In this document: positions 6,854-61,298 of the stretch, piece after piece | Layout of the letters: each line of letters begins with the position of its first letter | Numbering within the stretch: position 1 is the first letter of the stretch | Sequence record: NC_019929.1 | Direction: 5' to 3' (one strand) | Length of the DNA: 64,000 nucleotides | Notes under the pieces: model-generated | Databases searched by the model: none | What the model was told of the DNA's origin: nothing | Seen by the model: only the letters and a program-made list of their open reading frames with translations | Program-made: the position numbers and the translations under genes

Positions 6854-9043
6854 ATGCAGAGATTTAACATATTTCGAGATCAGGCCATCGCCCTCGCCAA
6901 ATCCTTGATTATCAAATCGGATTCGATTGCGAAGCAGATGAACCTGGCAATTACAGAGAGTGGCGGATACGTTTCCGATAACCGCGCAACGTGGCGTTAC
7001 TACCAGCACTTGGCCGGGCAACGTCACGCCATTGATAAACCGATTTATATCACGTCGTTAGACAGCGCTAACAACGAGCAGATAGAACTCACGACAGCGA
7101 ACCTGTCTCGTCATAAAAAGACCTCTAACGTTTACCGATCGAACCCCGAGTACATCGACCAGTTGATTCTCAACAATCTCGAATACGCGGTGTATATCCG
7201 TGGGGTGTTCTGGCCGGTGGATTTGGCCTACGCATTGCGCGTAGATGACTGTTCTATTCTGTATTACGACTCCGCGTTAGTGGAGTCCCAGGAGACGTCG
7301 TTAATTCCGTCTCTGGAAGCCCGTATCCGGGCACTGCATGTGCGGTACATGGCAGAAGGGTGGAAAGTCCATAACGATGCGTTCGTGCTGGCGTTCTATT
7401 CGATTCTGTTCCCGAACCTGCCGGGTATCATTATCTACCTGCGCGGGACAATGCAGCACACCACAGAAACGCACAGCTACTACGTCACGGAATTCCTGGC
7501 CTCTCACCAGGAGCTGCATGAGTTTATGCCGTACCTGACGCAGAAGCAGAAGTTTATTCTGTACCGCAACATCCGTTACTGGGAACGCAACTCAGGTAAA
7601 GAGGAAATCTTTAGCTGGCAGATTGACGCGCTCTTGACCGGATGGGGAATGCCTGCGGTGGGCTATAAAGTGGGTCAACAGATTCACGACCCGACCACCG
7701 GCAGTGACGATGACCTGTCACCGTTACCGATTGGCTACCAACAGTCACTCAACTACACCGAGAAAGATTCTGGGCGTGATTTAGACCTGGTTACCACCAC
7801 GGACATCATCCAGAAAGAAGTTGGGTTGGCTTATAACAACGCGGTATACGAACCGGAATACCAAACGGCGCTCGATACCCGACTGTCGTTGACCCAGTAT
7901 CCGAACCTGCCAACGAAACTCGTTGAGGTCACGGCCGTTGACCCCGAAGCTATCGAACGTTTTGAATTCATTCATAACCTCTTTAATGAATGGGTGCATT
8001 TGGTGGCCGAAGGGAAATACAACATCTACCACGAAATCCTTAACCCGACCAACGGGGATACTTTAAAACTGTCATCAAAAGAACTGCTCGCTCTGTTCTT
8101 GTATGCCAGCTATAAAGGTTACTCGGATGTTGCACTGGAAACCATCCCGGTGTTCAACGTATTTGGGGTGTTGATTAAACGCTGGGTACCGTTCACGGAA
8201 ATGGAGCAGCACCTTATCCCGAGCTGGGATAAACGCTTTGATGCCCTGATTAACTACTACACCGACACCCACACTGAGGTGATTGGCAGCGTAGGCTCTG
8301 CGGATGAACTCTACGATAACATCACGGAGATTATCACGCAGAAGCGCCGCCGGTGGCGTTACGGTAAGAACCGTCGCAAGTTAAAAGACCGTGCAGCGGG
8401 CGAGATGTTGTTTGCTTACCATTACCGCGACTACAAATGCGACCTGAAAATGTCGTATACCAGCTACGACCAGTTTTTCAAAACCTTCGGGTTTGATTAC
8501 ACACTGGTTTCAGCTGAGACGTGGCAGGATATCGCAACCGATGCGTTGAACGTTGCCACCAACATGGAAACCCGTGCGACTATCTCGCAGTCAGAGATTC
8601 AGCGGGCCATGGTACGGTTGATGACGAAGCTTTCTTCGTACACGGTTCACTTCGCTGCCCGTATGGGGTCTGATTCCTACGATGTGATGGACCCATTGTG
8701 TCCGATACTGGATGATATCCCCGCCAGTGGTGAAGGTACTGTTGATATCGTGGAGCCGTTGTTAGGCATCCAACGTGTCAGTCGTAACCAGTTCATGACC
8801 ACCGACACCGTTTTACCGGCCGCGCCGGTTATTAAATCGTTGGCAATTCCCCAACGCATCAAGCTTCGGATGAACGTTTACATGGGTATCCGTGTGAAAG
8901 TCAACCAAGAGGTGGTGGTCGATGTTAACCAACCGTCCGTGGATGTGATTCGCGTCCGGACGTCGTCTGATGAGTGGTCATTGAGCGAACGTGTGCCGCA
9001 AGGCGTGCTCGATGGTTTCCACCTCGACCAATTACCAAAGTGA
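6854..9043 (+). CDS. Large virion structural protein (phiKZ gp128-like, probable tail/baseplate)
   Basis: 729 aa from ATG 6854 (ORF-track extension to 6728 overlaps portal and is unlikely); synteny with portal. Confidence 0.65.
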   Translation: MQRFNIFRDQAIALAKSLIIKSDSIAKQMNLAITESGGYVSDNRATWRYYQHLAGQRHAIDKPIYITSLDSANNEQIELTTANLSRHKKTSNVYRSNPEYIDQLILNNLEYAVYIRGVFWPVDLAYALRVDDCSILYYDSALVESQETSLIPSLEARIRALHVRYMAEGWKVHNDAFVLAFYSILFPNLPGIIIYLRGTMQHTTETHSYYVTEFLASHQELHEFMPYLTQKQKFILYRNIRYWERNSGKEEIFSWQIDALLTGWGMPAVGYKVGQQIHDPTTGSDDDLSPLPIGYQQSLNYTEKDSGRDLDLVTTTDIIQKEVGLAYNNAVYEPEYQTALDTRLSLTQYPNLPTKLVEVTAVDPEAIERFEFIHNLFNEWVHLVAEGKYNIYHEILNPTNGDTLKLSSKELLALFLYASYKGYSDVALETIPVFNVFGVLIKRWVPFTEMEQHLIPSWDKRFDALINYYTDTHTEVIGSVGSADELYDNITEIITQKRRRWRYGKNRRKLKDRAAGEMLFAYHYRDYKCDLKMSYTSYDQFFKTFGFDYTLVSAETWQDIATDALNVATNMETRATISQSEIQRAMVRLMTKLSSYTVHFAARMGSDSYDVMDPLCPILDDIPASGEGTVDIVEPLLGIQRVSRNQFMTTDTVLPAAPVIKSLAIPQRIKLRMNVYMGIRVKVNQEVVVDVNQPSVDVIRVRTSSDEWSLSERVPQGVLDGFHLDQLPK

Positions 9044-9050
9044 GAGGCTT

Positions 9051-9572
9051 ATGGGATACCGTATTGATTTGACCAAACCCCCCAAGCAGATTCTGGTTGA
9101 CCGTTTTAACTACGTGTTCGGTCTATCCTATACTGCGGACAATTACGACTTCCACCCGGCAGGTGCTCAGCCCCTGACCAAAGAGGAAGTCCGTAAGAAA
9201 GGGGTCGAGTCTAAAGTTGCGGCGCGCTTTAAGAACGGCATTACCGGTCACCGTGAGTTTTACTTAACCCGTGCAGACTTGTCCAAGTTCCTTGTCGGGA
9301 TTGAAGTGGAAGTGCCGAAGGGTGCGGTAGAGTGGAGCCATGAACTCGCTCCCTACGTCATCGACCAGATTGGCTTAGACCTTGAGAAGTACGACATCAT
9401 GGTTGAGCCAATCACCGATGATATGGAAACGTATCAAGCTCGACTGATGCCAAATCACCTGTCTTTTAAAGGCACCATCACTATTGTATTTGTCGACCCG
9501 ACACCACGCTTGCTGGCGAACCTCGTCACGAAGCGGGCCTTGGATGGGTTCCTCTATGGAGTATTTCTATAA
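9051..9572 (+). CDS. Probable virion structural protein with anchor-like domain and C-terminal LDGF motif
   Basis: 173 aa from ATG 9051 after GAGG; YLTRADLSKF and LVTKRALDGFLY resemble the 41.6-61.3 kb paralogues. Confidence 0.65.
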   Translation: MGYRIDLTKPPKQILVDRFNYVFGLSYTADNYDFHPAGAQPLTKEEVRKKGVESKVAARFKNGITGHREFYLTRADLSKFLVGIEVEVPKGAVEWSHELAPYVIDQIGLDLEKYDIMVEPITDDMETYQARLMPNHLSFKGTITIVFVDPTPRLLANLVTKRALDGFLYGVFL

Positions 9573-10459
9573 TGGCTAACACCAAAGTTTACGATGGTAA
9601 ACTCTCGACGGTGACGTTAAACGCAATGCGTCTGGCCACTGCGCTTATCATGGGTTGTGATGTTCAGTATCCGCAGAAGTCAACGCTGAACGAATATTAC
9701 AAGCTCCAGACGGCAAAGCTGCCTGACGGCACCGAACGCCCCCACCTCCAGTACCTGTCCATCGGTAACCGTGGTCACATGGTTGACCAGTCAGATGTGG
9801 TAGCAGACGTGGTGCCGGTGGCGAAGACGCCGATTACTTCCGGGATGTTCTCCCGTGTGCCATTGGTGCTGCGTACGTTGGACAATGACCTGTCTGACGA
9901 ACAGCGCAAGCAATACGCCTTCCGTAACCGTGAAACCATCAACGGTCGCGAATACTGGGCCTATTACCTGAAACGCATTGACATGCGTGCGGTGAAAACG
10001 ACCGACCTTGATATCACCCGTGAAAACGGCGTGGAGAAAATCGAAGACTTCGTGTACACCGATACAGAGCTGAACCCGGTACCGAAAGAGCTGCCGGATT
10101 ACGATTACGACGATGACGGCACCGTGGAAATCCCGGACGGTCGTTACGTGGAATCGGGCGCTGACCTGGTGATCCCATGGACCGAATTTGACGTCCAGGA
10201 ATACATGAACGTGACCAGCATCATGCGCGGCTCCCCACGCAGTTCTATCATCTCTGAGATTGCCTTAAGCTCCGGTATTGATACCGTGGCCACCGGTAAA
10301 TCTGCAACAGGTTCAGATTTCAGCTACGATGAAGCCATCGGCGTGCAAGCGCTGTACTACATCTCGCTGTTCACTAACCTGGCACAAACCAACGATCGTC
10401 TGTCGCTGACTATCCGTGTAGGCCAGCCTGCACCGTTCTTCTTGGGGACTGCATCTTAA
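9572..10459 (+). CDS. Conserved phiKZ-like virion structural protein
   Basis: 295 aa; RTLDNDL...YAFR...YWAYYLKRID motif recalled from phiKZ-group structural proteins; TAATG coupling. Confidence 0.6.
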   Translation: MANTKVYDGKLSTVTLNAMRLATALIMGCDVQYPQKSTLNEYYKLQTAKLPDGTERPHLQYLSIGNRGHMVDQSDVVADVVPVAKTPITSGMFSRVPLVLRTLDNDLSDEQRKQYAFRNRETINGREYWAYYLKRIDMRAVKTTDLDITRENGVEKIEDFVYTDTELNPVPKELPDYDYDDDGTVEIPDGRYVESGADLVIPWTEFDVQEYMNVTSIMRGSPRSSIISEIALSSGIDTVATGKSATGSDFSYDEAIGVQALYYISLFTNLAQTNDRLSLTIRVGQPAPFFLGTAS

Positions 10460-11112: not shown

Positions 11113-11114
11113 CG

Positions 11115-13900: not shown

Positions 13901-14518
13901 ATGTCGTTTGTAATAGACTTCTCACATCACCATAGCCAAACCCTCCTCGATCTAGTGAACTTTGTCAACCAGGGAACGGTCTATGTGCCACTTTCAACAG
14001 AAAACATCGCTCTGGAGAACTTGGCTCCGCCGACACGAGAAGGCCGTTGGTCAGTAAAGCTGTCCGACAAAAAGAAACCAAGCGACTATGTGGTCGTGCA
14101 GTACACCAAAATAAACCTGGACGAGTTTATTACCATTCCGGAGAAACACCTGGGGTGGTTCGATTTATCAAAGGGTAAGCCGAAGGATTTATCGGTTTGG
14201 TCGCAGCCTGCGCTCGAAGCCTTTGAAACCACTTGTGAAGATTACGGCATGGTTATTGCCAAGTCATGGGAAAACCCTTCACAGTGTCATGTTGAGTACG
14301 ATTCTGTGCTCGACCGGTACGTTCTAATCTACGAATGTGAATCGTTTGTCTACGGTCCCCGTAGTCGCTTTGTGTTGCCGTATAACTTAGGCCAAGACCT
14401 GACCACGCCAACATTAGACGGGTTGAATTATGACCTGGCAGGATTCTGGGGACGGAAACTCCAGGAACTTGTAACGATTCGACGCATGGATGGATTTAAA
14501 TACCGTGTGTTTCCATAA
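13901..14518 (+). CDS. Probable virion protein, distant member of the anchor-domain family, with two C-terminal LDG(L/F) motifs
   Basis: 205 aa; QTLLDLVNFVN, YTKINLDEF, LTTPTLDGLNY, VTIRRMDGFKY. Confidence 0.6.
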   Translation: MSFVIDFSHHHSQTLLDLVNFVNQGTVYVPLSTENIALENLAPPTREGRWSVKLSDKKKPSDYVVVQYTKINLDEFITIPEKHLGWFDLSKGKPKDLSVWSQPALEAFETTCEDYGMVIAKSWENPSQCHVEYDSVLDRYVLIYECESFVYGPRSRFVLPYNLGQDLTTPTLDGLNYDLAGFWGRKLQELVTIRRMDGFKYRVFP

Positions 14519-15492: not shown

Positions 15493-16482
15493 ATGTCGCT
15501 TGATTTAGATTACATTACGCTGGAGGAGGACCTGGACAAGGTCCTTGCACTGGAGTCGCGTGGCGTGGGCCTAAACAACCCCGCCATTCAGTCGATTCGC
15601 AAACGTTGGTGTGTGGATACCCATGTGGCTCGCGAGTCGCGTGAACGTACCCAGACCACCTCCTCAACGCTGTATCAGATGTACCATGAAGTCGTTGGGC
15701 TTTTCAGCAACCGTTATCACGACGCTGTGCGGGTGATGACCAAGAACGCTGAGAAGATTGACGAGCATGTCGCCAAGATGGAAGGCTGGATGAAGCGTAC
15801 GTCGCATTTCACCGCCAAAGAAGTTCCATCCGCGGGGTGGTGCGCCCGTGTCTGTTACGAAGACGTACCGGACATCAAAGAGTGCATCAAACTGGCTAAC
15901 TCCGCGAACGGGTTAGAAGCTGCTGTGAAGCAGTACACTATCGTCACCAGTCAGATGGTGCTCGACCCCGGTAAAATCAAACGCAAAGTAGAAGACGGTG
16001 AACTGAAGGTCATTGGTTATTCTACCGCCGCAGCGGTACACCGTGCTTCGGGTATCCTGGGTCGCTTTGGTGAGGATGATGTGCAGGCTCGTCCAATGGC
16101 CGGGAATGTCTACGTCGTCACTTATGGGTCAGGCGATAAAGCCAAGCTGGACTTTGGGGTAGGGAATGGCGGTAACTACCGCGATACCATTGCTGCCTTA
16201 ACGGAAAGCGAATGTCGTCAGGCACTGGCCGCGGCTAAGAAGATTGCCAAGGCACTGCGTGACCGTGGGGCGAAAAACGGTATCTTTGGGTACAGCGGGA
16301 TTTACGAGGAAGTTGAGAAGATGAAAGCTCAGCTGAAAGACATGCACGGTGATGAACTGCGCGTGGCGACTCGCCGCTACAAGAACGCCTTGAAACTCGA
16401 AGATGCGTTCACTACCGCACTTGACCGTGTGGCCGATGGCCTCATCAGTTGGGTCGGTGCAACGTTGAAAGCCAACCAATAA
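15493..16482 (+). CDS. Probable internal head protein with cleavable propeptide (paralogue of next gene)
   Basis: 329 aa; ALES/ARES (AxE) motifs in N-terminus; aligns with 16495 protein (GVGLxNPA, WxxxVCxED, RPxAGNV, YKxAxxLEDxFTTAL). Confidence 0.65.
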   Translation: MSLDLDYITLEEDLDKVLALESRGVGLNNPAIQSIRKRWCVDTHVARESRERTQTTSSTLYQMYHEVVGLFSNRYHDAVRVMTKNAEKIDEHVAKMEGWMKRTSHFTAKEVPSAGWCARVCYEDVPDIKECIKLANSANGLEAAVKQYTIVTSQMVLDPGKIKRKVEDGELKVIGYSTAAAVHRASGILGRFGEDDVQARPMAGNVYVVTYGSGDKAKLDFGVGNGGNYRDTIAALTESECRQALAAAKKIAKALRDRGAKNGIFGYSGIYEEVEKMKAQLKDMHGDELRVATRRYKNALKLEDAFTTALDRVADGLISWVGATLKANQ

Positions 16483-16494
16483 CAGGAGCCGGAA

Positions 16495-17646
16495 ATGTCG
16501 ACGCTCGAATTGGATTTTGCAGTGCTCACCGATGACTGGGAGCGCTTGGTGGCGTTAGAGTCAATCGGTGTCGGGCTCGACAACCCGGCGGTACAAGCGA
16601 TTTGTCGTCGTTGGTGTATCACTGACGAAGAGTTACTCGTTGCCCGTGAATCGCGCGAGATGATGGAACGTGCCCAGGTGGTATCGGATTCCGCCGCCAA
16701 TCCCCGTCTGATTGAGAAGGTGATTATTGGTGGTGCACACCAGGCTGGACGGTTAGCCGAGAAGGGCATCCGTAAAGGTGCGAAAGCCGGTGCCCGTGGC
16801 GTGGCAAAAGTGTCAAAGAACCTGTTGTCGCGTTTTAATGCTTTCGCAGAAGATTTAGCGAAAGAACAAATCGAGTATATGAAGCACGCCGTTTCCAAAG
16901 CCACAAAGCTTGAGAAAGGAATGCAGCATCTGGCACTTGATTTAAAAGAACACAAATCCCTCGACATCCACCCGATTGAAACCGGTCGCTGGACATCGAA
17001 GGTGTGTATCGAAGATAAGGTTGATGTACACGGGTGTATCAGCTTTATCAGCCGCGGCAGCTCGTTAGAAGGGGCGGTACAAGAGTACGTGGTGAAAACC
17101 CGCGGCATTCTTGAATCGAAGAAAGTCACTGAGACCGGCAGCCTCGATAAGTTCGGGCGTTCCACGAACTGGGCGATTAAACGCTCTGCTGGGATTATGG
17201 GAATTGTCAACCCCTTCAAGAAAGTCTCTGCTCGGCCGCTGGCGGGTAACGTCGTGTTGGTTGAACACCACAACGGCGCGATTCAATACGCCGTGGCCAA
17301 TGACGGCGATTACGCTGACCATATCCCGTCCTTGTCTCATGCGGACTGTGAAGCGGCACTGAAAGCGGTACATCAAATTGTGGGTCTGCTGCGTGAGCGC
17401 GGTGTGAAACGCAAAACGGTGGGCTACACCGGCATCAGTGAAGAAGTCAATCACATGCGGCGTGAACTGAAAGGTGCCGAAGGCAAAGACATGATTGCGC
17501 TAACCAAGGCGTACAAGTCGGCAATGGCGCTGGAAGACTCCTTTACCACGGCATTAGTGCGGGTAGGCGAAGGGCTTTTGGAATACGTAAAACGTTCGCT
17601 AAAAGGGCAAGGCAGCAATGAAAGTCATTCTGATAACAAAGCCTGA
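16495..17646 (+). CDS. Probable internal head protein with cleavable propeptide (paralogue of previous gene)
   Basis: 383 aa; LVALESIGVGLDNPAV...VARESRE. Confidence 0.65.
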   Translation: MSTLELDFAVLTDDWERLVALESIGVGLDNPAVQAICRRWCITDEELLVARESREMMERAQVVSDSAANPRLIEKVIIGGAHQAGRLAEKGIRKGAKAGARGVAKVSKNLLSRFNAFAEDLAKEQIEYMKHAVSKATKLEKGMQHLALDLKEHKSLDIHPIETGRWTSKVCIEDKVDVHGCISFISRGSSLEGAVQEYVVKTRGILESKKVTETGSLDKFGRSTNWAIKRSAGIMGIVNPFKKVSARPLAGNVVLVEHHNGAIQYAVANDGDYADHIPSLSHADCEAALKAVHQIVGLLRERGVKRKTVGYTGISEEVNHMRRELKGAEGKDMIALTKAYKSAMALEDSFTTALVRVGEGLLEYVKRSLKGQGSNESHSDNKA

Positions 17647-28293: not shown

Positions 28294-28315
28294 ATGTAAG
28301 ACCCTAAAGGAGGAT

Positions 28316-41567: not shown

Positions 41568-41635
41568 CCCCTTTTAATATGCTGGCAGGGGGTCATAGAC
41601 GTGACCTCAACAATCCCTTTAAACGAGTTAACGCG

Positions 41636-46865: not shown

Positions 46866-47711
46866 ATGGGACTCAACTACAGTAAGCCTTCTGACTTGCT
46901 GGTCTTCGATCTGTTAAACCGGGACAACCCCGGTTTACCGATTCCGGTGGATGCGAATAACGTCATCATCGAGAAGATTACGCAAGTGACGCCAGGCCCG
47001 GCCAATAACAACCGCAACACCCAGGCACGGTTACGTGGGGTACAGGGAATGGGGTTCCGCGATTCCCTGACCTTGTACTACGACCGTATCAGTTTGGCAC
47101 GGCTTATCCCTTGGTGGAGCTACGGTACAACTACACGTACCGCGTGCGGTATTACCAACTTCACAGCAGCGAACCTGCACGAACTCCTGCCATCCATTCT
47201 GGATACGTACGGTATTAACCTGCAACCCAAAGATGTGACCAATCAAAACTTTAGTGGTGTAGGCCAACCGAACTATAACTTCACCTACGCTTGTAATGCG
47301 TTGGCGACTTCGCCTGCGTATTTCAGCGGTTTCACCGGTTACCTGATGCGTGGTCTGCCGGTGCTGGATACGTCGATTACGATTGACACCTTGAACGTCA
47401 TGAAGCACCCGATTGGCATTGACACCAATCAGATGTGTGTGGACTTGATGACCTGGGGTATCGATTTCACGGCGTACAAGAACCTGCTGACGGTCACGTC
47501 GGGCGGTCTGCCAAACTGGGCAGGTCTACGTAACCTGTTGGACAGCCTGGGTGTGCCGAACTACGCTGCACCGATGAGTTCCAACACGGTGCAAGACGTC
47601 GCCACCACGGGGAACCAGTGGGCGAACAAAGACTACGACCGCGTGGTGATTCAAACCGGTATCGATGAGACCGGAGCGAAGGGTGTAGCCTACTATCACT
47701 ACAACAACTAA
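46866..47711 (+). CDS. Virion structural paralogue, family I, copy 7
   Basis: VFDLLNRDN, RNTQARL.G..G.GF, YYDRISL, GVAYYHYNN. Confidence 0.75.
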   Translation: MGLNYSKPSDLLVFDLLNRDNPGLPIPVDANNVIIEKITQVTPGPANNNRNTQARLRGVQGMGFRDSLTLYYDRISLARLIPWWSYGTTTRTACGITNFTAANLHELLPSILDTYGINLQPKDVTNQNFSGVGQPNYNFTYACNALATSPAYFSGFTGYLMRGLPVLDTSITIDTLNVMKHPIGIDTNQMCVDLMTWGIDFTAYKNLLTVTSGGLPNWAGLRNLLDSLGVPNYAAPMSSNTVQDVATTGNQWANKDYDRVVIQTGIDETGAKGVAYYHYNN

Positions 47712-49196: not shown

Positions 49197-50186
49197 ATGG
49201 CATTTATATTGCGCTGGACGAACCCAAACGCAATGAGCACGGTGATTAACATTTACCGTGACACCAAAGACATCCTCACCAGTGCCTTGCCTGCACCGAT
49301 TGCCACGTTAAGTAATGGCGAAACCGAATGGCGCGACACTACCGCACTGGGCGGGAAAACCTACTACTACCTGATGACCGTTACCGCTAACGGTAAAACC
49401 GTCGCTGGCCCTTCCACCCCGTATACCGTCGCGGTGAAACGCGGTATTGGTCCGAGTACCTTTATCCACGGGGACGACAAGCTGGGCTTTATGGGGGTGG
49501 TGCCGTACGAAGAACGTTTCGACGTTAACCAACTTCCTGCAACCTTCCTGTCCATGTTCCCAAACGCGTTCACCGATCGTCCTGTGTTGTTGAAGTTCAG
49601 CTACTACGGGAAGATTATTTACGTCCCGGAATTCTCTCCCTCTATTGGGTTTGCCAGTTGGGCAGCACTTTACACCAACGGGTTAATCTACGGACGTGAT
49701 GACAATGGCCCGGATGGGGGTTGGGGAACACTGACACCTACGAAGCAGGATGCCAAAGTTGTCCATAAAGGTGACATTTACCGGATGCGCGTACCACGGG
49801 GTATCGTGGGGCAGAACACACCAGAGGTATTAGCCTTTAATAACGATTTCCAGTTGAAAGACCATGACGCGGTTGACCTTGGTAACAACGAGTTCAACGA
49901 CTTGATGTACGCCATGGTACTGGACTTCCCAGTAAAGCAGCGTGCCATTAATGCCCACGTATACAGCTCAACGTATCTCGGTGCGGGTGGTGTAGTTAGC
50001 GCTAACCCGAATTTGAACGGTGGTACGGTGTGTATGGAGCACGACAGTGCAAGTGAGCGAGTGTTACATCGCGGACATTATATTACCGCAACGAACCAAT
50101 CGCAGCTCAGTCTAATGCAGCGTATCAACTACGTGACTCCGCAGCAGGCTGGCCGTTATCTTCCCATCTTTGAACTGGTAGAATAG
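49197..50186 (+). CDS. Triplet module 1, gene B: FN3-like domain + domain Y
   Basis: LRWTNPN..IYR..YYYL (FN3-like W/Y pattern), GIGP..HGD..GFMG, YLPIFEL. Confidence 0.8.
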   Translation: MAFILRWTNPNAMSTVINIYRDTKDILTSALPAPIATLSNGETEWRDTTALGGKTYYYLMTVTANGKTVAGPSTPYTVAVKRGIGPSTFIHGDDKLGFMGVVPYEERFDVNQLPATFLSMFPNAFTDRPVLLKFSYYGKIIYVPEFSPSIGFASWAALYTNGLIYGRDDNGPDGGWGTLTPTKQDAKVVHKGDIYRMRVPRGIVGQNTPEVLAFNNDFQLKDHDAVDLGNNEFNDLMYAMVLDFPVKQRAINAHVYSSTYLGAGGVVSANPNLNGGTVCMEHDSASERVLHRGHYITATNQSQLSLMQRINYVTPQQAGRYLPIFELVE

Positions 50187-50194
50187 GAGCAGTT

Positions 50195-51124
50195 ATGACC
50201 ATTCGTTTAAGCTGGGTTTCACAGGCCAGCAAAAACCTGACTGCTATCGAAATCTATCGTAAAGTTGGGTATGCAGCCACACTCGACGTGAATGCTCCTG
50301 GGACGCCGTATAAGACACTTTCTCCAACAGCCACAGAGTTTATCGAGAATGTGTCTGACGTGACGGAGAAGACCATCTACAGCTACTGGGTAGCAGGTGT
50401 GAAAGATACTGAACGTTTGTTCGGCGCACGGATCGTGCAAGGGTTCTTTTTGGATACTGGGCCAGGCCCACAAACCATTCTCCGTGGAGATTGGTACTGT
50501 GGTTACTTTGGACCGGTTTCTGCTGCGGACTTCTTTACGACCGCTGAAATAAAATCCCTGCTGCCTACAACGCAGGCAGCGATGTTCAGCAACGAACCAG
50601 GAACATGGCACAAGTTTATCTACCTGGGTAGGATTGTGTTCATACCGGCTTCGCAACATACCCAAGCCATTTTTTCTAACGCATACACCCGTGGAATGGC
50701 TTACGGTACCGATGACAACGGTACTATCGTCCCCACAGGCCAAACGGCAACGAAACAAGATGCCCGTATCGCGAAGAATGGCCGCACGTACCGTATTCGT
50801 TTACCTCGAGCTGATGCATACGACACTAAACTCGATGTTACCAACGGTGAGTGGTTCTCGACCATGGGTCGAATGTTTAACAACGCCAACGATTACTCGA
50901 AGGTGGTGGATGCGAATGGGGTAGGGCGTGGAAAATTTGGTGGGTTGGCATTGCTGGGCAATACCGCCAACCAAACCGATCCTGGTGCACAATGTTTAAT
51001 GCCGATGTATAGCGCCGGGACCGTGTTCTTTGCTTACGGTTACCGACCAGATTCGTGGACCACCACCTCATCGCTGAGTACGAACATCGGTATGAGTTTT
51101 GTGTTTGAATTAATCCTCCCGTAA
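50195..51124 (+). CDS. Triplet module 1, gene C: FN3-like domain + domain Y
   Basis: LSWV..IEIYR..YSYWV, TGPGP..RGDW..GYFG, FVFELILP. Confidence 0.8.
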   Translation: MTIRLSWVSQASKNLTAIEIYRKVGYAATLDVNAPGTPYKTLSPTATEFIENVSDVTEKTIYSYWVAGVKDTERLFGARIVQGFFLDTGPGPQTILRGDWYCGYFGPVSAADFFTTAEIKSLLPTTQAAMFSNEPGTWHKFIYLGRIVFIPASQHTQAIFSNAYTRGMAYGTDDNGTIVPTGQTATKQDARIAKNGRTYRIRLPRADAYDTKLDVTNGEWFSTMGRMFNNANDYSKVVDANGVGRGKFGGLALLGNTANQTDPGAQCLMPMYSAGTVFFAYGYRPDSWTTTSSLSTNIGMSFVFELILP

Positions 51125-51136: not shown

Positions 51137-52537
51137 ATGGGGTTTTACAGTGATACGTCGTTGGCACTGTTGTGTCAACAGATTCTCCGTGATAACCCCG
51201 GATTACCTTACCCGCTGACGAAAGACAATGTGCTTATCTTAAGCGGGCCTTTAACTTCCGGTTTAGGGACGAGTGGGCGTAACAGCCGCATTACCTTAAA
51301 CGGGAAGTTAGGGTCGGGTTTTTCTGGGCGTAAGGAGTTCTTTTACGATCGCCTGAAAATGGAATCCATTTATACCAGCCTGCTATCGACGCTGGTACTG
51401 ACGATGCCAAATGGCGTAGCGACCAATGCAGACTTGCTCCCCACTATCAACGATGCGTTGGGATTAGGGTTAGCGTCAACAGACTTAGCTGCCCCCAGTA
51501 CCACGTTAGGGTTAGGCCGTACACCAACCACTGCAACGCTGGCATTGGCCACTAACTGTCCGTGTTTTACTGGCACCCTCACCGTGCAGTGGCAACGCGG
51601 CAGTACCGCGATTTATCCCGATTCGGGCCCTGGCAGTAAAGTGATGTTGATGGGTGACTTGAACGAAGGTTACTTCGGGATGGTGACACAACAGGAACTG
51701 GCAAAAGGGGTGGATGTCTATGCTGCATTTGCTGAGGGGAAATCCTTAGGCACAGCAGGTGGGGTCGATACCGCAGATATGTTCTGGCTGAAGTTTGCGT
51801 TAGACGGCAAGATTTGTTATTTCCCGTCACGCAACATCGGTGCAAACATCACCTGGAATACCCTGGCTAATAACGGGGCAGCCCGCGGAGATGCCAAATA
51901 CCCGATAACCTTCGAAGCAGGTGATGGCAGTACCGTCTTTGCACAACTTCGCCTACCCAACATCAGCACCACCGAAGTTGTTAATCCGAGTCGTGGCGAT
52001 CCTACGTCCGACCCAGTGCGGTTGTTCAACAAAGTCCACAAACAGACATACGGCACCGGTGTCTGGGACGAACTCACCACCATTAACATGGCTGAGGTGT
52101 TCTGGTGGTTAAACCGATATGCGGCATCCAGTGGTAACTCGGCTGTTATCAGTCAGTTTAACATCGCCTCTGTTAACGCCAATGCCATTGTCAATACACA
52201 CAACTGGCGACCCATGCTGGTGTTGGTGGATGGGGAATTGGTACTGGTTCCTCTTCGGAATGTGCAGGGTGAACGCTATTCGGTGTTATCCGCGCCGGGA
52301 CTAACCTACGATCGTACTCCTGACCCGAAACAACTTACGCGTGTGCGGGATGTGAATGGTACGCTGGATAACCCGGTTAGGAAGCCTTGGTTGAACCCAG
52401 TGGGCAGTGCGCCATTAACGGCAGTGCATAACCTCGCCATTGTTCGCGGGTTAAAGCCTATCCATCCGCAAGTAAGTGTGACCATCAACACCAAGATTAA
52501 TCTGGCCACGGCCAACGGTGAATTAACCGGTTTCTAA
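51137..52537 (+). CDS. Triplet module 2, gene A
   Basis: 466 aa; FYDRLKM, SGPGSK..GD..GYFG, WRPMLVL, NLATANGELTGF. Confidence 0.8.
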   Translation: MGFYSDTSLALLCQQILRDNPGLPYPLTKDNVLILSGPLTSGLGTSGRNSRITLNGKLGSGFSGRKEFFYDRLKMESIYTSLLSTLVLTMPNGVATNADLLPTINDALGLGLASTDLAAPSTTLGLGRTPTTATLALATNCPCFTGTLTVQWQRGSTAIYPDSGPGSKVMLMGDLNEGYFGMVTQQELAKGVDVYAAFAEGKSLGTAGGVDTADMFWLKFALDGKICYFPSRNIGANITWNTLANNGAARGDAKYPITFEAGDGSTVFAQLRLPNISTTEVVNPSRGDPTSDPVRLFNKVHKQTYGTGVWDELTTINMAEVFWWLNRYAASSGNSAVISQFNIASVNANAIVNTHNWRPMLVLVDGELVLVPLRNVQGERYSVLSAPGLTYDRTPDPKQLTRVRDVNGTLDNPVRKPWLNPVGSAPLTAVHNLAIVRGLKPIHPQVSVTINTKINLATANGELTGF

Positions 52538-52549: not shown

Positions 52550-53587
52550 ATGTCTTTAAAACTCTCGTGGAACAACCCCAACGTTGTTCCTACCCGTGTC
52601 CGGATTTATCGGAAAGACACGGATTTCGATTCCAGCACGTTGCCCGCACCGTTAGTGGAACTGACGAACGGTGAAACCACCTGGATTGACCCGACCGCCG
52701 TTGATGGTAACAGTTACTATTACGTTCTCGGGTCAAAGACCGACACGGATGAGGTCTTCACTGCCAGCCAAAAGATTCTGGTGGCAGATAACCGGGGCGT
52801 CGGGTCGAGCACCATTCTGCACGGTGATGCATCGCTGGGTTACATGGACTCGATTCTGTCTGTGGATTTTGTTAACTCGTCAACCATTCTGGCAGCTGCC
52901 CTTAATGCGTCCGGTTTACCGGTTGCGCTGGTACAGCCGACATGGCACAAGTTCATTCGCAACAACAAAATCATCTATGTTCCTGACCAGCAATTCGGGA
53001 CGGCCTCTTTCCCGAATCTGTACCGTGCCGGGTTTGTCTACGGTACGGACTCTGTGGGGCCAGAAGGTTACCCAACAGCTGGTCTGGCAGCACCCGTAAA
53101 CCAGTTACGGATTATCGAGTTCAAAGGCCAGAAGTACAAAATCCGCCTGATGCGGGGCTGGAGTGACGGGGTGATTACTGACGTTAACAACTGGGCCAGC
53201 ACCGGTCAAAGCAACATGGATTTGGTGCCGGAGGCGCAGAACAACGAGTACAGTGACCTTATCTACTCACTGGCAAAATTCGTACCGTTAAAACAACGTA
53301 CGCCGAACTGGCTTAATCTGTCGGTTGACCCGTGGCTGGGCGCACCTTTGTCATCTTACGACAGTGCCACCATCAACAGCTGGCGTGCCACGTTCCGTGT
53401 TCTGTGTCAAGAACGGCGGGCAAACGGGAACATTTTTACGCGCAGTATGCGTGAGTGTACGCTGAACCAAAACCAGGGTAGCCCGAACTCGAAAGCGAAC
53501 TTGACGTACGTGTTTTTGGGCGATGTTAACCAGGCCACTATTTGGATTCCGGTACTGGAACTCGTTGAACAAACCGCCACACTGTAA
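52550..53587 (+). CDS. Triplet module 2, gene B
   Basis: LSWNNPN, RGVG..HGD, WHKF, WIPVLEL. Confidence 0.8.
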   Translation: MSLKLSWNNPNVVPTRVRIYRKDTDFDSSTLPAPLVELTNGETTWIDPTAVDGNSYYYVLGSKTDTDEVFTASQKILVADNRGVGSSTILHGDASLGYMDSILSVDFVNSSTILAAALNASGLPVALVQPTWHKFIRNNKIIYVPDQQFGTASFPNLYRAGFVYGTDSVGPEGYPTAGLAAPVNQLRIIEFKGQKYKIRLMRGWSDGVITDVNNWASTGQSNMDLVPEAQNNEYSDLIYSLAKFVPLKQRTPNWLNLSVDPWLGAPLSSYDSATINSWRATFRVLCQERRANGNIFTRSMRECTLNQNQGSPNSKANLTYVFLGDVNQATIWIPVLELVEQTATL

Positions 53588-53598
53588 GGGAGGCTGGC

Positions 53599-54483
53599 AT
53601 GGGTATTAAACTCAAGTGGGACGATCAGTCGGCCCAGAATCTGGACGGGATTGAAATCTACCGTTCAGCCACAAAGATTGACAGCAACAATCCCGGTGCC
53701 CCACTGGCCACGATTGCCGGTAGCGCAACAGCGTACGAAGACAACAGTGTTCTGAACAAGTCACTGTATTACTATCGTATCCTGGCGAAGAAAGGCACGG
53801 ACAAAGCCTGGTCAGAAAATATCCTGGCCGGGTATTTCGCAGAAACGGGGCCGGGTAACCCAACGCCATTACGTGGCGATTGGAATGCTGGGCTGATGGA
53901 CACTGTGCTGCCGCAGGATCTTATCACCAATGCGGCACTACGGGCGAAGGTGCCATCGTTGGCAGCACTCAGTGGCGCTGCGGAACCTGGTGCTTGGTAT
54001 AAGTTCTGTTATAAAGGGACCGTGTTCTTCTGCCCCAGCGCATCCATCGTTACCGCGAGTTGGTCACAGTTATATTCGGCTGGTTTGGTCTACGGGACAG
54101 ACGATGTGGGTGTGTCACCTTCCGGGCCAACAGGGACTGTCAAACAACGGACAGTGGTGAACATCAACGGGCTGAACTATATTCTGCGGTTACCACGCAT
54201 GTCGACCTTGCCGTTAAACCAGTACGTGGTTAATCAGGCTGACACGCTAGGCAGTGAGTGGCGCGACACCGTTGCGCGTTTAGTTGCAGACGGGGTAGAC
54301 ACTTCACCGGGAAGCCGGACTCGCCTGTTTGATTTGGGTTCCTTCGCAAATGCGTTGGGGCCACACCTCAATACCAACGTTAACGTGGCAGGGGTGACCT
54401 CTACAAAACCTGAGACATTGGTTGCTTACAACAGCGGTGCTTCGGTTGCGCAAACTTTGGTGTTAGAACTCATCATGCCTTAA
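53599..54483 (+). CDS. Triplet module 2, gene C
   Basis: LKWDDQ, TGPG..RGDW, WYKF, LVLELIMP. Confidence 0.8.
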   Translation: MGIKLKWDDQSAQNLDGIEIYRSATKIDSNNPGAPLATIAGSATAYEDNSVLNKSLYYYRILAKKGTDKAWSENILAGYFAETGPGNPTPLRGDWNAGLMDTVLPQDLITNAALRAKVPSLAALSGAAEPGAWYKFCYKGTVFFCPSASIVTASWSQLYSAGLVYGTDDVGVSPSGPTGTVKQRTVVNINGLNYILRLPRMSTLPLNQYVVNQADTLGSEWRDTVARLVADGVDTSPGSRTRLFDLGSFANALGPHLNTNVNVAGVTSTKPETLVAYNSGASVAQTLVLELIMP

Positions 54484-54493: not shown

Positions 54494-56017
54494 ATGGGGC
54501 TTTATAACAAGACGTCCCTCGAACTGTTGTGCCAACAAATCGAACGGGACAATCCCGCAACCGCGGGTCAACTTGACGCGGCGTCGATACTGGTGCTCAG
54601 CGGGCCCTTAACCACTGGTCTTGGAACAAGCGGGCGCAATGCCCGCATTATCCTGAACGGTCGTTTAGGAAATGGTTTTATCGGAAAGAAGGAATTCTTT
54701 TACGACCGTTTAAACATTGGACAAATGTTCAAAGGCATCACAGTGGTGTTTCAGGCAGAGGGGTCGTCTAAGACGTACGCCGATTTACTGCCCGCGCTGA
54801 ATGCGCAATATGGATTGGGGTTAGCGGCGGCAGACATTGCCAACGCCACCACCAAACTCCCTTATGGCTACGCGCCAACACAGCTCACGTTAACCATCGC
54901 TGCAACGTCCCTGGCGTATACGGGTACGTTGTCAGTGACCTGGTCACGGAAACCGGTGGGTGTCTTCCCGGAATCTGGCCCAGGTTCGAAGGTCATGCTT
55001 ATCGGGGACATGAATGAGGGCTATTTCGGGGTTGTGACCGAAGCCGAGTTGTTCAGCCCAGTGGAAGTCCTCAGTCAACTGAACGAAGGGCGTACTGAGC
55101 CTTACGGGACGTTACAGGCCATGCCAACCAGTCGGTTTTGGTATAAGTTCGCACGCGATGGGAAAATCTTCTATCTCGCGAACTACAACCAAATCAGTAT
55201 TCGCTGGCAGGAGTTGTACCGCTTGGGGGGTATCTACGAAACGGATACGCCAGACAATAAACAGTTCCCGCCCGATGGGGTGCTGTCTCGTCAAAAGAGC
55301 GTGTTGAAGAAGAAGGAAAATGGGCGCGATTGGTATCTCTCTCCAACCGCACCGAAACTCGCGGGGAGTGACCCGTGGGAGTACGCCGGAGTAAACCAAA
55401 CCCCTGACCCAGGTGGGGACGTTGCGAGACTGTTTGCAAAGGTTGTACCATCGGGTGGTTTCGCCACCGGGGAATGGGATGGTCAAATCATCAATGCTGA
55501 CGGGTTCTGGATGTCCACGACATCACAAACCTCGCCTGCAAATGCATACGGCAGTAGCATGATCGGTGCCAACCAGGGTCAGTACAATAAAACCAACTTT
55601 GTTGGGGGCTGGCGACCGTTCCTGGAACTGGTTGATGTAACCAAAATCGCATTAGGCTTGAACCCGTTCAGTGGGGTACCGGAAGGGGTGTTAAGAAAAC
55701 CTCTGGTCTCCATCAGTCCAGAAGTGACGGATGTGTTGTTAACCCTGAGTGATGTGAAGTGGGAACAAAACGGGGCATTGCGCATTCCGTTAGTGTCGCA
55801 GACATTGCAACCGTTACAAATGACCACGTATTTTGGCTGGACGCGGTTACTTCGTCCGGCTCTCGTGACGGTAAAGCATGAGCCGATACGTAACGTCAAC
55901 CAGGTAGGGTGGACTCGCCCTCTCCGGCGACCTGTCGCGGCACTGACCGTGGACTACAAGGAATCAACAGCCTTTAACTTAGCCAACGCCAACGGTGAGC
56001 TAAACGGCTTTAAATAA
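54494..56017 (+). CDS. Triplet module 3, gene A
   Basis: 507 aa; FYDRLNI, SGPGSK..GD..GYFG, GWRPFLEL, NLANANGELNGFK. Confidence 0.8.
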   Translation: MGLYNKTSLELLCQQIERDNPATAGQLDAASILVLSGPLTTGLGTSGRNARIILNGRLGNGFIGKKEFFYDRLNIGQMFKGITVVFQAEGSSKTYADLLPALNAQYGLGLAAADIANATTKLPYGYAPTQLTLTIAATSLAYTGTLSVTWSRKPVGVFPESGPGSKVMLIGDMNEGYFGVVTEAELFSPVEVLSQLNEGRTEPYGTLQAMPTSRFWYKFARDGKIFYLANYNQISIRWQELYRLGGIYETDTPDNKQFPPDGVLSRQKSVLKKKENGRDWYLSPTAPKLAGSDPWEYAGVNQTPDPGGDVARLFAKVVPSGGFATGEWDGQIINADGFWMSTTSQTSPANAYGSSMIGANQGQYNKTNFVGGWRPFLELVDVTKIALGLNPFSGVPEGVLRKPLVSISPEVTDVLLTLSDVKWEQNGALRIPLVSQTLQPLQMTTYFGWTRLLRPALVTVKHEPIRNVNQVGWTRPLRRPVAALTVDYKESTAFNLANANGELNGFK

Positions 56018-56028: not shown

Positions 56029-57012
56029 ATGGCACTTAAACTTCTCTGGAAGAATCCCAATACCGTTGCAACCACGATTGACATTTACCGCGGTGACACG
56101 TCGAACGTTAGCTTAACCACGCCACTGAAAACCGTGGATGGTGCGGAGACGTCGTGGATTGACACCACGGCATTGTTTGGGAAAACGTACTATTACGTCT
56201 GGGCAGTAAACTCGGCAGTTGACCGGGTCGTGTCTCGTCCGCAGAAAATCGAAGTCTCTGACCGTCGTGGGCCAGGGTCGAACTTGTTGCGTCACGGTGA
56301 TGAGAACTACGGTTACTACGGTGCGGTGTCAGCGGCGGACTTCGTTAACAGCACCACGCTGTATAACGCAGCGAAAAACACCTCCGGTTTACCGACTACC
56401 GTTATCTACCCGACGTGGCACAAATTTGCCCGTAAAGGGAAAGTCGTCTTTGTGCCCAACCAGTGGTTCGGGGATGTTACCTGGCAGAGTCTGTATGACG
56501 CGGGTCTGGTCTACGGGACAGATGATGTTGGCGGAGCCAATCCGGCAGGCACCGTTAACCAGTTGACCACTTTTGATTTCAACGGTGAAACGTTCCTGAT
56601 TCGTTTGATGAAAGGAATGCCAGAGGGTCTCGTGTGGGACGGGTCAAACTTTAACCCGAATACCTTCGCCCCGATGAAAGACGTCTACGCCGAATACGAG
56701 GACTTCCTCTACCCGTTGTGTAAAGACGCGCCGTTACGCCAAAGAATGGTCTCGGTTGATACACTCGACGGCAGGGCCTGGATACCAGGGGCAGCCTACA
56801 ACAACCGTGTCAACTATGGGGTGATTTGTCAGGAAGCCCTGGCCAACGTGTTGGTACGTGGTACGCCGAACTACAACAACGACCCGTCAACACGCAGTTC
56901 CATGGAATCCACGATTGCCCGCAGTCGTACCGCCGGGACACCGTGGGTACCGGTTGTCGAATACGTGGGTCGTGTAGGTGAGACCTTTACCCTGCCGAAG
57001 ACGGCCAAGTAA
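56029..57012 (+). CDS. Triplet module 3, gene B
   Basis: LLWKNPN, RGPG..HGD, WHKF, WVPVVEY. Confidence 0.8.
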   Translation: MALKLLWKNPNTVATTIDIYRGDTSNVSLTTPLKTVDGAETSWIDTTALFGKTYYYVWAVNSAVDRVVSRPQKIEVSDRRGPGSNLLRHGDENYGYYGAVSAADFVNSTTLYNAAKNTSGLPTTVIYPTWHKFARKGKVVFVPNQWFGDVTWQSLYDAGLVYGTDDVGGANPAGTVNQLTTFDFNGETFLIRLMKGMPEGLVWDGSNFNPNTFAPMKDVYAEYEDFLYPLCKDAPLRQRMVSVDTLDGRAWIPGAAYNNRVNYGVICQEALANVLVRGTPNYNNDPSTRSSMESTIARSRTAGTPWVPVVEYVGRVGETFTLPKTAK

Positions 57013-57022
57013 GGAGTAGAAC

Positions 57023-57919
57023 GTGGGTATTAAAATTAACTGGGACGACCAGACTGACCAGGCACTGGATGCAGTAGAAGTGTATCGGAGCACCTCACCT
57101 ATTGATGAGAATGCACCTGGAACCCCTATTGCGACTTTACCGGGCACGGCACGAGAGTACGAAGACACCGGCGTGAAGAACGGTAACACGTACTACTACC
57201 GTGTGGCAGTGGTGAAAGGCGCTAATCGCTCTTTCGGTACTCAACAGACCGCAGGGTACTACTCTAACCTCGGGCCCGGTCCGAAGAAGATTCTGCGGGG
57301 CGATTGGATAGCTGGGTATTTCGGTGAGATGCTGAATGCAGACTGGGTGTTGCCGTTGGATGTGGCGAACAAAATTACCGCAGCCCTGAAATCCACCGTT
57401 GGGATTAACTACATCACCTCGTCTGACCGTTGGCACAAGTTTATCTATAAAGGTAAAGTGTTGTTCGTGCCATCTACCCGACTGATGTACTCGACGTATG
57501 CAAACGCGTACAACGCCGGGTTCTTGTTCGGTGAAGACGGCGTTGGCCAACTGCCGACGGGGCCTGCGGGGAACGTTAATCAGAAAACGGTTATCGAGAT
57601 TGGTGGGTATCAGTTCCTGGTACGCCCTATCCGCATGTCGGACAAACCAACTTCGCAGTACCTGACCGCACAAGCGGACTTTGTGGAAAGCGAATGGAAG
57701 AAGACGTTTGCCCGTTTGCGTATCGATGCGAACGCACAAACCGACCCAACCATCTTTGCCCGGTTCAGCGACTACACCACCATCGACTGGTGCGGCGGCC
57801 CACACCAGGCAAGCGCAACGACGTGTGCAACTGCGGTTAACGGCAACCCGGAGAATCTCGGTACCACGGCGAACACCAGTAACATCAACTGGTGTATTGC
57901 ATTGGAATTGATTCCGTAA
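57023..57919 (+). CDS. Triplet module 3, gene C
   Basis: INWDDQ, GPGP..RGDW..GYFG, WCIALELIP; GTG start after AAGGAG. Confidence 0.8.
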   Translation: MGIKINWDDQTDQALDAVEVYRSTSPIDENAPGTPIATLPGTAREYEDTGVKNGNTYYYRVAVVKGANRSFGTQQTAGYYSNLGPGPKKILRGDWIAGYFGEMLNADWVLPLDVANKITAALKSTVGINYITSSDRWHKFIYKGKVLFVPSTRLMYSTYANAYNAGFLFGEDGVGQLPTGPAGNVNQKTVIEIGGYQFLVRPIRMSDKPTSQYLTAQADFVESEWKKTFARLRIDANAQTDPTIFARFSDYTTIDWCGGPHQASATTCATAVNGNPENLGTTANTSNINWCIALELIP

Positions 57920-60184: not shown

Positions 60185-60709
60185 ATGGCAAAAACAGCAC
60201 GAGCGCAATTTATTGCGATGTTCAACGCGGATAACACTGGTCTGGCGCAAGCACTGGTCGAAGCAGATGTTACCTTTGGCGCAGTGGCCGAATATGACCC
60301 TGCCGATGAGGCCGATACCCGCAACTCCAAAGTGACGCTGACTGCCGTTGCAGAAAGCACGCACTTTACCGGGGAAAAGGAATTCCACTTCACCCGTCTG
60401 GCTGCAAACATCGTTGGTGCGAAAGCAGTTACCGATGACCAGGCCGACTGGGACACCGATGCCGAAGTCCTGGCATTCCTGAATGCTGACGTTATCTCCG
60501 CTGGTAAAGCGGATGATGCGTTTGCACTCAGCGAGCTGGACATTGTTCGTACCGATGGTGCGGATGATGCGAAAGTGATTACCGTCACTATCAAAGCCGG
60601 TCACCTGAAGTTCCTGCCAGGCGATGTGGCAGTCTACACCATTACGCAAGAGATCACTAAAACTGACCTCTCTACCACAAATGGTGAGCTCAACGGTTTC
60701 ACAGCTTAA
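60185..60709 (+). CDS. Short virion paralogue: anchor domain + NGELNGF tail (probably abundant)
   Basis: FIAMFNADN, RNSKV, FHFTRL, DLSTTNGELNGF; strong codon bias. Confidence 0.8.
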   Translation: MAKTARAQFIAMFNADNTGLAQALVEADVTFGAVAEYDPADEADTRNSKVTLTAVAESTHFTGEKEFHFTRLAANIVGAKAVTDDQADWDTDAEVLAFLNADVISAGKADDAFALSELDIVRTDGADDAKVITVTIKAGHLKFLPGDVAVYTITQEITKTDLSTTNGELNGFTA

Positions 60710-60732
60710 TAAGCTACTAAAACCGCTATTCA

Positions 60733-60766
60733 CGGGAGACCATTAGGTCTCCCGCTTTTTATTTTG
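60733..60766 (+). terminator. Intrinsic terminator
   Basis: CGGGAGACC-ATTA-GGTCTCCCG plus T-tract. Confidence 0.85.
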
Positions 60767-60791
60767 TTTACTTTAACGGAGTGAAGTAAGT

Positions 60792-61298
60792 ATGGCTAAG
60801 TCGTTGCAAGAACTGTTTGTCGATATGATCAACGAAGTCAATCCAGATTTAGGGTTAACGCTCAGTGACGTCACATTCGGTGCGCCTTCCGAATACACCC
60901 CTGCGGATTCAGGGGACACCCGTAATACCGTGTTGACCTTAGTGGCAAAAGATGACAGCCCGAATTTCAAGGGCAGTAAAGATTACCACTTCTTCCGCTT
61001 CAATTTCACTAACCCTGGCGGTGTCACTACCCCAACATTAACCACCGGGGATTTGATTGGGAACTGGCAGGACGATGCAAAGGTCTTGATGGTCATGAAC
61101 ATGATGCTGCCGAATTACAAACTGACAGCAGAAGAGATTGGCATCGAACGCGTGACCGTGGATGCCACCACGTTAGATGTACGCATCACCATCGACCCGA
61201 ATCATTTAAAGTGGCACGGGACATTTGTGACACGCGTAATCGACGAAGGGAAAACCAACCTGCAATGGTTGAATCCCGAGTTGAGCGGGTTCAAATAA
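60792..61298 (+). CDS. Short virion paralogue: anchor domain + NPELSGF tail
   Basis: FVDMINEVN, DVTFGAP, RNTV, YHFFRF, NLQWLNPELSGFK. Confidence 0.8.
   Translation: MAKSLQELFVDMINEVNPDLGLTLSDVTFGAPSEYTPADSGDTRNTVLTLVAKDDSPNFKGSKDYHFFRFNFTNPGGVTTPTLTTGDLIGNWQDDAKVLMVMNMMLPNYKLTAEEIGIERVTVDATTLDVRITIDPNHLKWHGTFVTRVIDEGKTNLQWLNPELSGFK

Follow-up and report, generated by a model that had tools for sequence, protein, structure and literature searches.

In the first 64,000 bases of the genome of Erwinia phage phiEaH2 (NC_019929/JX316028, identical by megablast, same coordinates; this whole stretch is hereafter the window), a short peptide motif, L-x(6-8)-L-[DSNT]-G-[FL], recurs in the region running from the end of gp006 through the end of gp080. 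The motif is a conserved linker, here called the clip, that follows the N-terminal domain (NTD), or socket, of DUF7941 proteins and probably docks in trans to build filaments: the clip of one protomer would dock on the NTD of the next, and proteins with both elements would join head to tail, giving the virion flexible filaments of heteropolymeric make-up. phiEaH2 is a giant phage of 243 kb that belongs to the genus Erskinevirus of the Chimalliviridae, a family in which DUF7941 proteins occur.

A preliminary description of the window had listed the motif in several protein classes, and every listed occurrence exists. It stands directly after the NTD in gp059, gp062 and gp064 of family I, closes the short paralogues gp079 and gp080 as a C-terminal copy, and ends all three triplet A proteins (gp066, gp069, gp072) about 300 residues past their domain; gp007, listed by its start at 9051, has a copy four residues from its C-terminus, the reading frame at 13901 (gp015) has two, one strict and one with M in place of L, and gp006, a 729-residue protein without the domain, has one five residues from its end. 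When the translations of the 82 annotated genes of the window were scanned and compared with 2000 residue shuffles, the core L[DSNT]G[FL] was seen 13 times (3.9 expected) and the full pattern 11 times (0.94 expected), and seven proteins held the core inside their last 12 residues (0.13 expected). Since the carriers are homologous DUF7941 proteins, this excess is mostly paralogy.

The DUF7941 NTD is carried by 13 proteins of the window. Pfam family PF25613 matches gp007, gp059, gp062, gp064, gp066, gp069, gp079 and gp080 (33-277 bits, cut-off 27), and gp060, gp061, gp063, gp065 and gp072 were added by BLASTP and by a hidden Markov model (HMM) trained on the 13 NTD proteins of the window; gp006 and gp015 had no Pfam match. 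The family profile matches phiKZ gp127 (PDB 9xqd, E=3e-17). In an AlphaFold2 (AF2) model of gp066, built with 36 homologues, the NTD has a fold of mixed helices and strands, which is predicted without the peptide at a per-residue confidence (pLDDT) of 83-94, and its top Foldseek match is the solved phiKZ gp127 NTD (9xqd_0, a 150-residue target; probability 1.00, TM 0.52). A PDB sequence search with gp066 gave no match, Foldseek against the PDB found no solved relative of its middle domain (the NTD alone matched), and a BFVD search returned uncharacterised giant-phage virion proteins only. Searched with a profile, a set of 1.8 billion representative proteins yielded 3,425 DUF7941 relatives. The genes and motif copies concerned are the following, with bit scores referring to the clip profile:

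6854-9043, + strand: gp006, baseplate wedge protein, homologue of phiKZ gp128 by its match to PDB 9xqs_C (E=3.5e-79)
8981-9025, + strand: clip-like motif of gp006, five residues from the C-terminus; no DUF7941 domain in the protein
9051-9572, + strand: gp007, short DUF7941 protein (Pfam PF25613), orthologue of SPN3US gp83
9051-9503 and 9510-9557, + strand: NTD and clip of gp007, the clip (13.9 bits) four residues from the end
9572-10459, + strand: gp008, DUF7208 baseplate spoke protein (Pfam PF23838, E=6e-100), without clip
13901-14518, + strand: gp015, possible divergent NTD and two clips; its SPN3US orthologue, gp91, is tail-associated
14387-14431 and 14459-14503, + strand: clips of gp015 (11.7 and 6.5 bits, family-derived profile)
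41579-42433, + strand: gp059, family I, i.e., NTD, clip and C-terminal domain (Pfam 5e-71); clip at 42056-42103 (22.6 bits)
42444-43277, + strand: gp060, family I (family alignment); degenerate clip at 42891-42938 (7.2 bits)
43287-44141, + strand: gp061, family I (alignment, NTD HMM); degenerate clip at 43758-43805, below the profile threshold
44162-45058, + strand: gp062, family I (Pfam 2.7e-82); clip at 44660-44707 (20.1 bits)
45127-45963, + strand: gp063, family I (alignment, NTD HMM); degenerate clip at 45595-45642 (7.1 bits)
45975-46862, + strand: gp064, family I (Pfam 4.8e-76); clip at 46446-46493 (9.9 bits)
46866-47711, + strand: gp065, family I (alignment, NTD HMM); degenerate clip at 47364-47411 (10.1 bits)
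47766-49184, + strand: gp066, triplet A (Pfam); NTD at 47766-48224, beta-rich middle domain (AF2 model)
49137-49178, + strand: clip of gp066, one residue from the end, behind a proline-rich tail predicted to be disordered (residues 382-457)
49197-51124, + strand: gp067 and gp068, triplet B and C (paralogue BLASTP); no NTD, no clip, no Pfam match
51137-52537, + strand: gp069, triplet A (Pfam); clip at 52493-52534, the very C-terminus
52550-54483, + strand: gp070 and gp071, triplet B and C (paralogue BLASTP)
54494-56017, + strand: gp072, triplet A (NTD HMM); clip at 55973-56011
56029-57919, + strand: gp073 and gp074, triplet B and C (paralogue BLASTP)
60185-60709, + strand: gp079, short paralogue of NTD and clip only (Pfam); clip at 60659-60700
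60792-61298, + strand: gp080, short paralogue (Pfam); clip at 61251-61292
127157-127699 of phiEaH2 (L004:13157-13699), outside the window, - strand: gp157, NTD and canonical clip, 180 residues

In all seven members of family I the motif forms the linker that joins an NTD of about 155 residues to a C-terminal domain (CTD) of about 110, and its first leucine and closing proline are invariant (7/7); by alignment, the linker of gp060, gp061, gp063 and gp065 is the same except that the G[FL] core is missing. The chains of gp007, gp079 and gp080 terminate just past this linker, and the triplet A proteins consist of the NTD, a beta-rich domain common to the B and C proteins, a proline-rich tail and, last, the motif. 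Two clip classes can be distinguished, LDG[FL]xYP (family I, gp007, gp015 and gp157) and NGELxGF (gp079, gp080 and triplet A), the latter being two residues shorter; a clip-only profile made from relatives outside the window is significant for the LDG[FL]xYP type.

The clip is among the best conserved parts of the family. In 215 NTD copies drawn from the best 150 of the 3,425 representatives, which come from diverse phages, the two clip leucines are retained in 81% each, the glycine in 71%, F/L in 64%, the tyrosine in 52% and the proline in 75%, with the best columns of the domain core at 77-82%. Among the orthologues of gp079 (n=44) the best conserved stretch of 10 residues is the clip (mean entropy 0.47 vs. 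0.55-1.35 elsewhere), after whose phenylalanine come 0-8 variable residues. Of the clip residues in triplet A orthologues, four are the same in every sequence (29/29), behind a tether that is much more variable between phages (entropy 2.2-2.5), and five orthologues stop cleanly about 13 residues earlier, being therefore natural clip-less variants. Phages with a triplet A protein that stops short of the clip include Machina, Caitlin and pEa_SNUABM_8. Both domains of the gp066 model are confident and residues 382-472, motif included, fall below a pLDDT of 50; the triplet A clip thus ends a predicted-disordered tether, and the model does not place it back against its own NTD. To judge from the sequence, a conserved short peptide within or at the end of predicted disorder has the look of an interaction motif. 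Long proteins with a single NTD have a C-terminal clip in 0/7 cases when a clip adjoins the domain vs. 8-10/24 when none does, a sample too small and phylogenetically dependent to serve as evidence. Loss of the triplet A clip and loss of the gp079-type clip follow no simple common pattern, as the phages with a clip-less triplet A protein (Machina, pEa_SNUABM_8) keep a clip-bearing gp079-type protein. As to the tether itself, that of gp066 (48909-49136, + strand; residues ~382-457) holds an internal proline-rich duplication of about 25 residues (~401-420 vs. 431-450), and the triplet B and C proteins end where triplet A runs on into the tether.

Natural concatemers and structure models bear on docking in trans. 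Among the best 150 representatives, 53 hold 2-9 tandem NTDs, and a significant clip is found in 54 of the 66 NTD-NTD junctions, whose length varies little (median 33.5 residues, interquartile range 31-39). In three related tandem proteins with an inserted domain the clip lies about 97 residues past the upstream NTD and 9-13 residues before the downstream one. P0158, a natural NTD-clip-NTD-clip protein, was modelled by AF2 with a predicted template modelling score (pTM) of 0.79; its clip reaches a pLDDT of 94-96 before an NTD, and the free C-terminal copy of the same motif 67/57/48, a disparity that speaks against self-packing because a self-packed clip should be equally ordered at both sites. 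In this tandem model the clip consists of a two-residue strand and a four-residue helical turn with one bridge. The solved chain of phiKZ gp127 comprises residues 1-150 and stops before its own linker.

The preliminary description had proposed a plug-and-socket system in which the peptide attaches to the anchor domain of the subunit that follows and chains of interchangeable subunits result. This mechanism is probably right in outline; it was reached independently and is already published for homologues, since a preprint of April 2026 on Goslar (bioRxiv 10.64898/2026.04.21.720040) proposes it at the same linker. There DUF7941 proteins are said to consist of an NTD followed by a disordered linker and, in some, a CTD; in AlphaFold3 dimers the linker, plus the CTD if present, docks on the NTD of the next protomer; purified gp22 forms filaments in negative stain without other phage proteins, and gp23, which has NTD and linker only, is predicted to oligomerise (10.64898/2026.04.21.720040). 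A gp126-gp127 heterodimer was fitted into unassigned phiKZ baseplate density, and a filament "cloud" rooted at the peripheral baseplate was proposed, with a predicted protomer spacing of about 7 nm (10.64898/2026.04.21.720040). The linkers of Goslar gp22, gp23, gp31, gp33 and gp34 occupy the same profile positions as the clip, and alignments together with the AF2 NTD of gp066 give the window proteins the NTD-linker-(CTD) architecture of gp22/gp23. The two systems thus share the Pfam family, the forms with and without a CTD, the proposed head-to-tail docking, and one long and one short abundant paralogue (gp22/gp23 as SPN3US gp141/gp160). They differ in that the preprint, in its accessible text, treats the element as a disordered linker and defines no sequence motif, has no wedge clip, tethered C-terminal clip or tandem concatemers, and puts the filaments at the peripheral baseplate, while the SPN3US orthologues of the window proteins are mostly head-associated. 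In the phiKZ atlas, gp127 lies where the gp139 spoke ends in the outer baseplate (PDB 9xqd; PMC13250141). phiKZ gp127/gp126 resemble the window proteins in the homologous NTD (E=3e-17; fold probability 1.0) and in the gene order portal / wedge / DUF7941, but phiKZ has only about three members, its gp127 linker is without the LDG[FL] core and its gp128 without a C-terminal clip; gp126 is NTD-only, a possible chain terminator of a kind not evident in phiEaH2.

If the clip docks in this way, the short paralogues gp007, gp079, gp080 and gp157 would be minimal extenders made of NTD and clip, and gp059-065 of family I extenders with an extra C-terminal domain. The triplet A proteins (gp066, gp069 and gp072), with a socket, a beta-rich domain and a tethered clip, could insert side domains into the chain.

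The location of the proteins on the virion can be approached through phage SPN3US, where the orthologues are gp82 (of gp006), gp83 (gp007), gp84 (gp008), gp91 (gp015), gp138-153 (gp059-074), gp160 (gp079) and gp237 (gp157). Those of the family are one-to-one, with 31-80% identity and conserved gene order (BLASTP; SPN3US gp83, gp138-154, gp160, gp237), and by orthology and synteny the DUF7941 family of the window is the SPN3US "paralog family B"; gp062 and gp079 correspond to the abundant gp141 (75% identity) and gp160 (66%). In the SPN3US studies, a tail-tube amber mutant was examined by quantitative proteomics of heads purified on step and buoyant-density gradients (PMC5694885, PMC5105663, PMC10052503). 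On its tailless, DNA-filled heads gp82, gp84, gp91 and gp237 dropped to 0-6% of wild type and gp83, gp138-154 and gp160 stayed at or above the wild-type level, and the pattern was alike in another tailless mutant studied earlier (PMC5694885, PMC5105663, PMC10052503). By these data tail-protein behaviour is confined, within the family, to the orthologues of gp015 and gp157. The suggestion in the preliminary description that gp006 seeds chains of about 14 subunits does not agree with them, as gp82 is lost from tailless heads that keep the orthologues of gp007, gp059-074 and gp079. Since most orthologues stay on heads without the wedge, the large cluster cannot depend on the latter as its root, and any chain seeded by the wedge could at most be a tail-associated one with gp015 and gp157. 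The same papers, as far as their accessible text goes, differ from our reading in treating family B as head proteins of unknown function, with no motif or polymerisation mechanism (PMC5694885, PMC5105663, PMC10052503).

With regard to the two tail-type members, gp157 is the sole DUF7941 protein encoded in the phiEaH2 genome outside the window and adjoins gp159, a protein of 2382 residues that corresponds to the SPN3US tape measure, gp239. For gp015 the annotation probably begins too far downstream, at 13985, the correct start being the ATG at 13901: this gives 205 residues, the same length as SPN3US gp91, and the extra N-terminal residues hold the weak similarity of gp015 to the NTD (profile-profile probability 19%). 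Some further SPN3US observations concern the cluster. Within each triplet, A, B and C yield roughly comparable spectral counts, which hints at A-B-C complexes, and near the cluster SPN3US differs in that the NTD-bearing gp154 and gp155 come after it. The motif was also considered as a prohead-protease site or capsid-targeting propeptide, and this was rejected because family B is absent from the SPN3US lists of processed proteins. SPN3US lysates contain an unidentified tetragonal protein lattice with a repeat of about 67 Å (PMC7552025); its nearness to the spacing of about 7 nm predicted for DUF7941 filaments is probably a coincidence, the authors pointing to the compartment-enclosing proteinaceous sheet of 201phi2-1-infected cells.

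Several results weigh against filaments built by clips docking in trans. The persistence of nearly all orthologues on the heads of two SPN3US tailless mutants conflicts with a filament cloud rooted at the baseplate, and no clip-only head protein to root the chains was found in the phiEaH2 genome, where only family members score above a null of about 3.2 bits. Neither the NGELxGF clips nor the gp006 copy are significant against the family-wide clip profile, and their assignment rests on position and orthologue conservation. Inter-domain linkers are in any case better ordered than free ends, termini being generally predicted with less confidence, and docking on the next NTD is read from confidence values and architecture only. 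Moreover, three other long-junction tandem proteins keep the clip beside the upstream NTD, opposite to the arrangement in the inserted-domain proteins, which makes the support from the latter modest.

This last arrangement would fit a motif that acts in cis only, as the last element of the NTD or a conserved hinge on its own chain that recurs by paralogy. Such a role would also agree with the position of the motif directly after the last NTD strand in most members, and with an enrichment largely due to homology. We regard it as unlikely, because the motif also ends a 90-residue disordered tether remote from any domain and stands on the tails of wedge proteins without an NTD, AF2 confidence is low where no NTD follows, the gp127 NTD was solved without its own linker, and in Goslar gp23 is a predicted oligomer and gp22 forms filaments. 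Somewhat less likely again is a common virion-targeting signal, read by a single capsid or neck receptor or an assembly factor and not by the NTDs. It would account for the orthologues of gp007, gp059-074 and gp079 staying on purified tailless SPN3US heads and for the motif being the one element common to otherwise differing architectures, but tail proteins carry it too (by the SPN3US data, the orthologues of gp006, gp015 and gp157), tandem NTD-clip arrays would make little sense, purified Goslar gp22 polymerises by itself, and no candidate receptor was identified. A functionless recurrence of the four-residue core by chance or composition is very improbable, for although about four cores are expected in the 82 proteins, those of gp003 and gp049 being probably such matches and that of gp006, taken alone, not being significant (~0.1 expected among 68 proteins for a C-terminal core in a non-family protein), it would leave the C-terminal excess, residues invariant across orthologues of 40-80% identity and the family-wide column conservation to be explained.

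Within the docking reading, the preliminary description had likened the clip to donor-strand complementation in pili, and this analogy was not supported: the fold is predicted with confidence in the peptide's absence, the peptide lies on the C-terminal side of its domain, and it is modelled as a short turn with isolated bridges. Chaperone-usher pili are alike in that each subunit has a socket and a peptide filling the socket of its neighbour, giving a non-covalent head-to-tail polymer, but their donor peptide is N-terminal, and the NTD is neither immunoglobulin-like nor predicted to be incomplete, nor is the clip predicted as a long strand. Foldseek gave no significant pilin match for the NTD (best fimbrial match E=3.6, probability 0.06), and no chaperone or usher gene was found among the neighbours scanned against Pfam, a part of the window genes, which yielded DUF7208 and DUF1353 only; the DUF1353 match falls on the gene annotated as tail assembly chaperone. 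Another known system to compare is the recognition of short linear motifs by domains, as in the beta-augmentation of PDZ domains by C-terminal peptides. Like these, the clip is a conserved peptide of 12-16 residues in disorder, often C-terminal and movable between unrelated proteins; it differs in requiring no free carboxylate at a fixed distance (0-8 residues follow the phenylalanine in the gp079 orthologues), and there is no fold relationship.

The wedge protein illustrates this mobility. According to its alignment with 9xqs_C, which covers residues 4-629 only, gp006 is a homologue of phiKZ gp128, a helical baseplate wedge subunit. Its tail motif is retained in orthologues of 60-92% identity while the flanks change, and four distant wedge homologues score 15.8, 12.4, 5.9 and 3.0 bits, all in the last 80 residues, with a clip profile made from non-window sequences only and a null expectation of 0.1 hits per set. 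Two clip-like repeats stand in a C-terminal extension of the Goslar wedge protein, and in phiKZ gp128 there is none. As distant wedge tails carry it, the clip is a portable module placed on the wedge by several lineages, and wedge proteins with a tail clip and no NTD could start a chain at the baseplate, the gp006 copy being degenerate. Six proteins (P0055-P0058, P0060 and P0064, from Salmonella phages SPFM7-12 and SPFM20) were left out of the tail analysis; they match the gp006 HMM at a BLASTP coverage of 3-6% and look like mis-framed open reading frame calls. The order portal (gp005, - strand) / wedge (+ strand) / DUF7941 is common to phiEaH2 (4119-10459), phiKZ, Goslar and two metagenomic contigs, these being the two examined among the contigs of the clip-bearing wedge homologues. 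In phiEaH2 the spoke gene gp008 comes next after the DUF7941 gene, its product matching phiKZ gp139 and the Goslar homologue of gp139 in the PDB (E~5e-33), and spoke homologues lie near by in Goslar and in the metagenomic contig L011. The order in L011, a wedge protein with clips, then NTD, clip and CTD, then NTD-only, reads like starter, extender and cap.

An extended form of the docking reading is a modular wiring code of starters, extenders, branch points and caps, a possibility that we hold tentatively and find rather doubtful. In it an NTD-less wedge protein with a clip would root a short tail chain, in phiEaH2 gp006 followed by gp015 or gp157, and a separate, larger polymer of gp062- and gp079-type proteins would coat or hang from the head or neck. 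The tethered clip of triplet A would hang B/C-type domains on this second polymer, and the LDG[FL]xYP and NGELxGF clips would pair with different sockets.

Head-to-tail docking through the DUF7941 linker was, as said, already known from the Goslar homologues. The accessible portions of the cited work do not contain the explicit motif and its extreme conservation, the relocation of the clip behind a tether in triplet A, the clip on wedge tails, the abundant natural tandem concatemers or the division of the paralogues between head and tail. The SPN3US "paralog family B", of about 20 members, makes up a large share of the virion protein species and has been without a function since 2016, and the DUF7941 filament model gives it a concrete, testable mechanism. 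The clip is in addition a searchable signature, better conserved than most of the fold, which could be looked for in any protein so as to find starters (such as the wedge tails) and adaptors (such as triplet A). The comparison also exposes a conflict, in that the phiKZ and Goslar structures put DUF7941 at the outer baseplate and the proteomics of tailless SPN3US mostly at the head. DUF7941 virion proteins probably have a part in the initial contact with the host, and understanding them therefore bears on how giant Erwinia and Salmonella phages recognise cells.

Other genes adjoin the subject without sharing its elements. Directly upstream of the family I cluster lies gp058 (39707-41524, + strand), annotated as an exopolysaccharide (EPS) depolymerase; it has no NTD and no clip, and its attachment to the virion is therefore not explained by the clip system. 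Outside the window, the hypothetical protein gp181 (136 residues; phiEaH2 163627-164037, + strand) matches the core four residues short of its C-terminus; SPN3US-like phages possess orthologues, and evidence that gp181 belongs to the virion was not found. The window also holds two further paralogue pairs that have nothing to do with the motif: gp018/gp019, annotated as internal head proteins and 32% identical (15493-17646, + strand), and gp036/gp037 (27844-28792, + strand).

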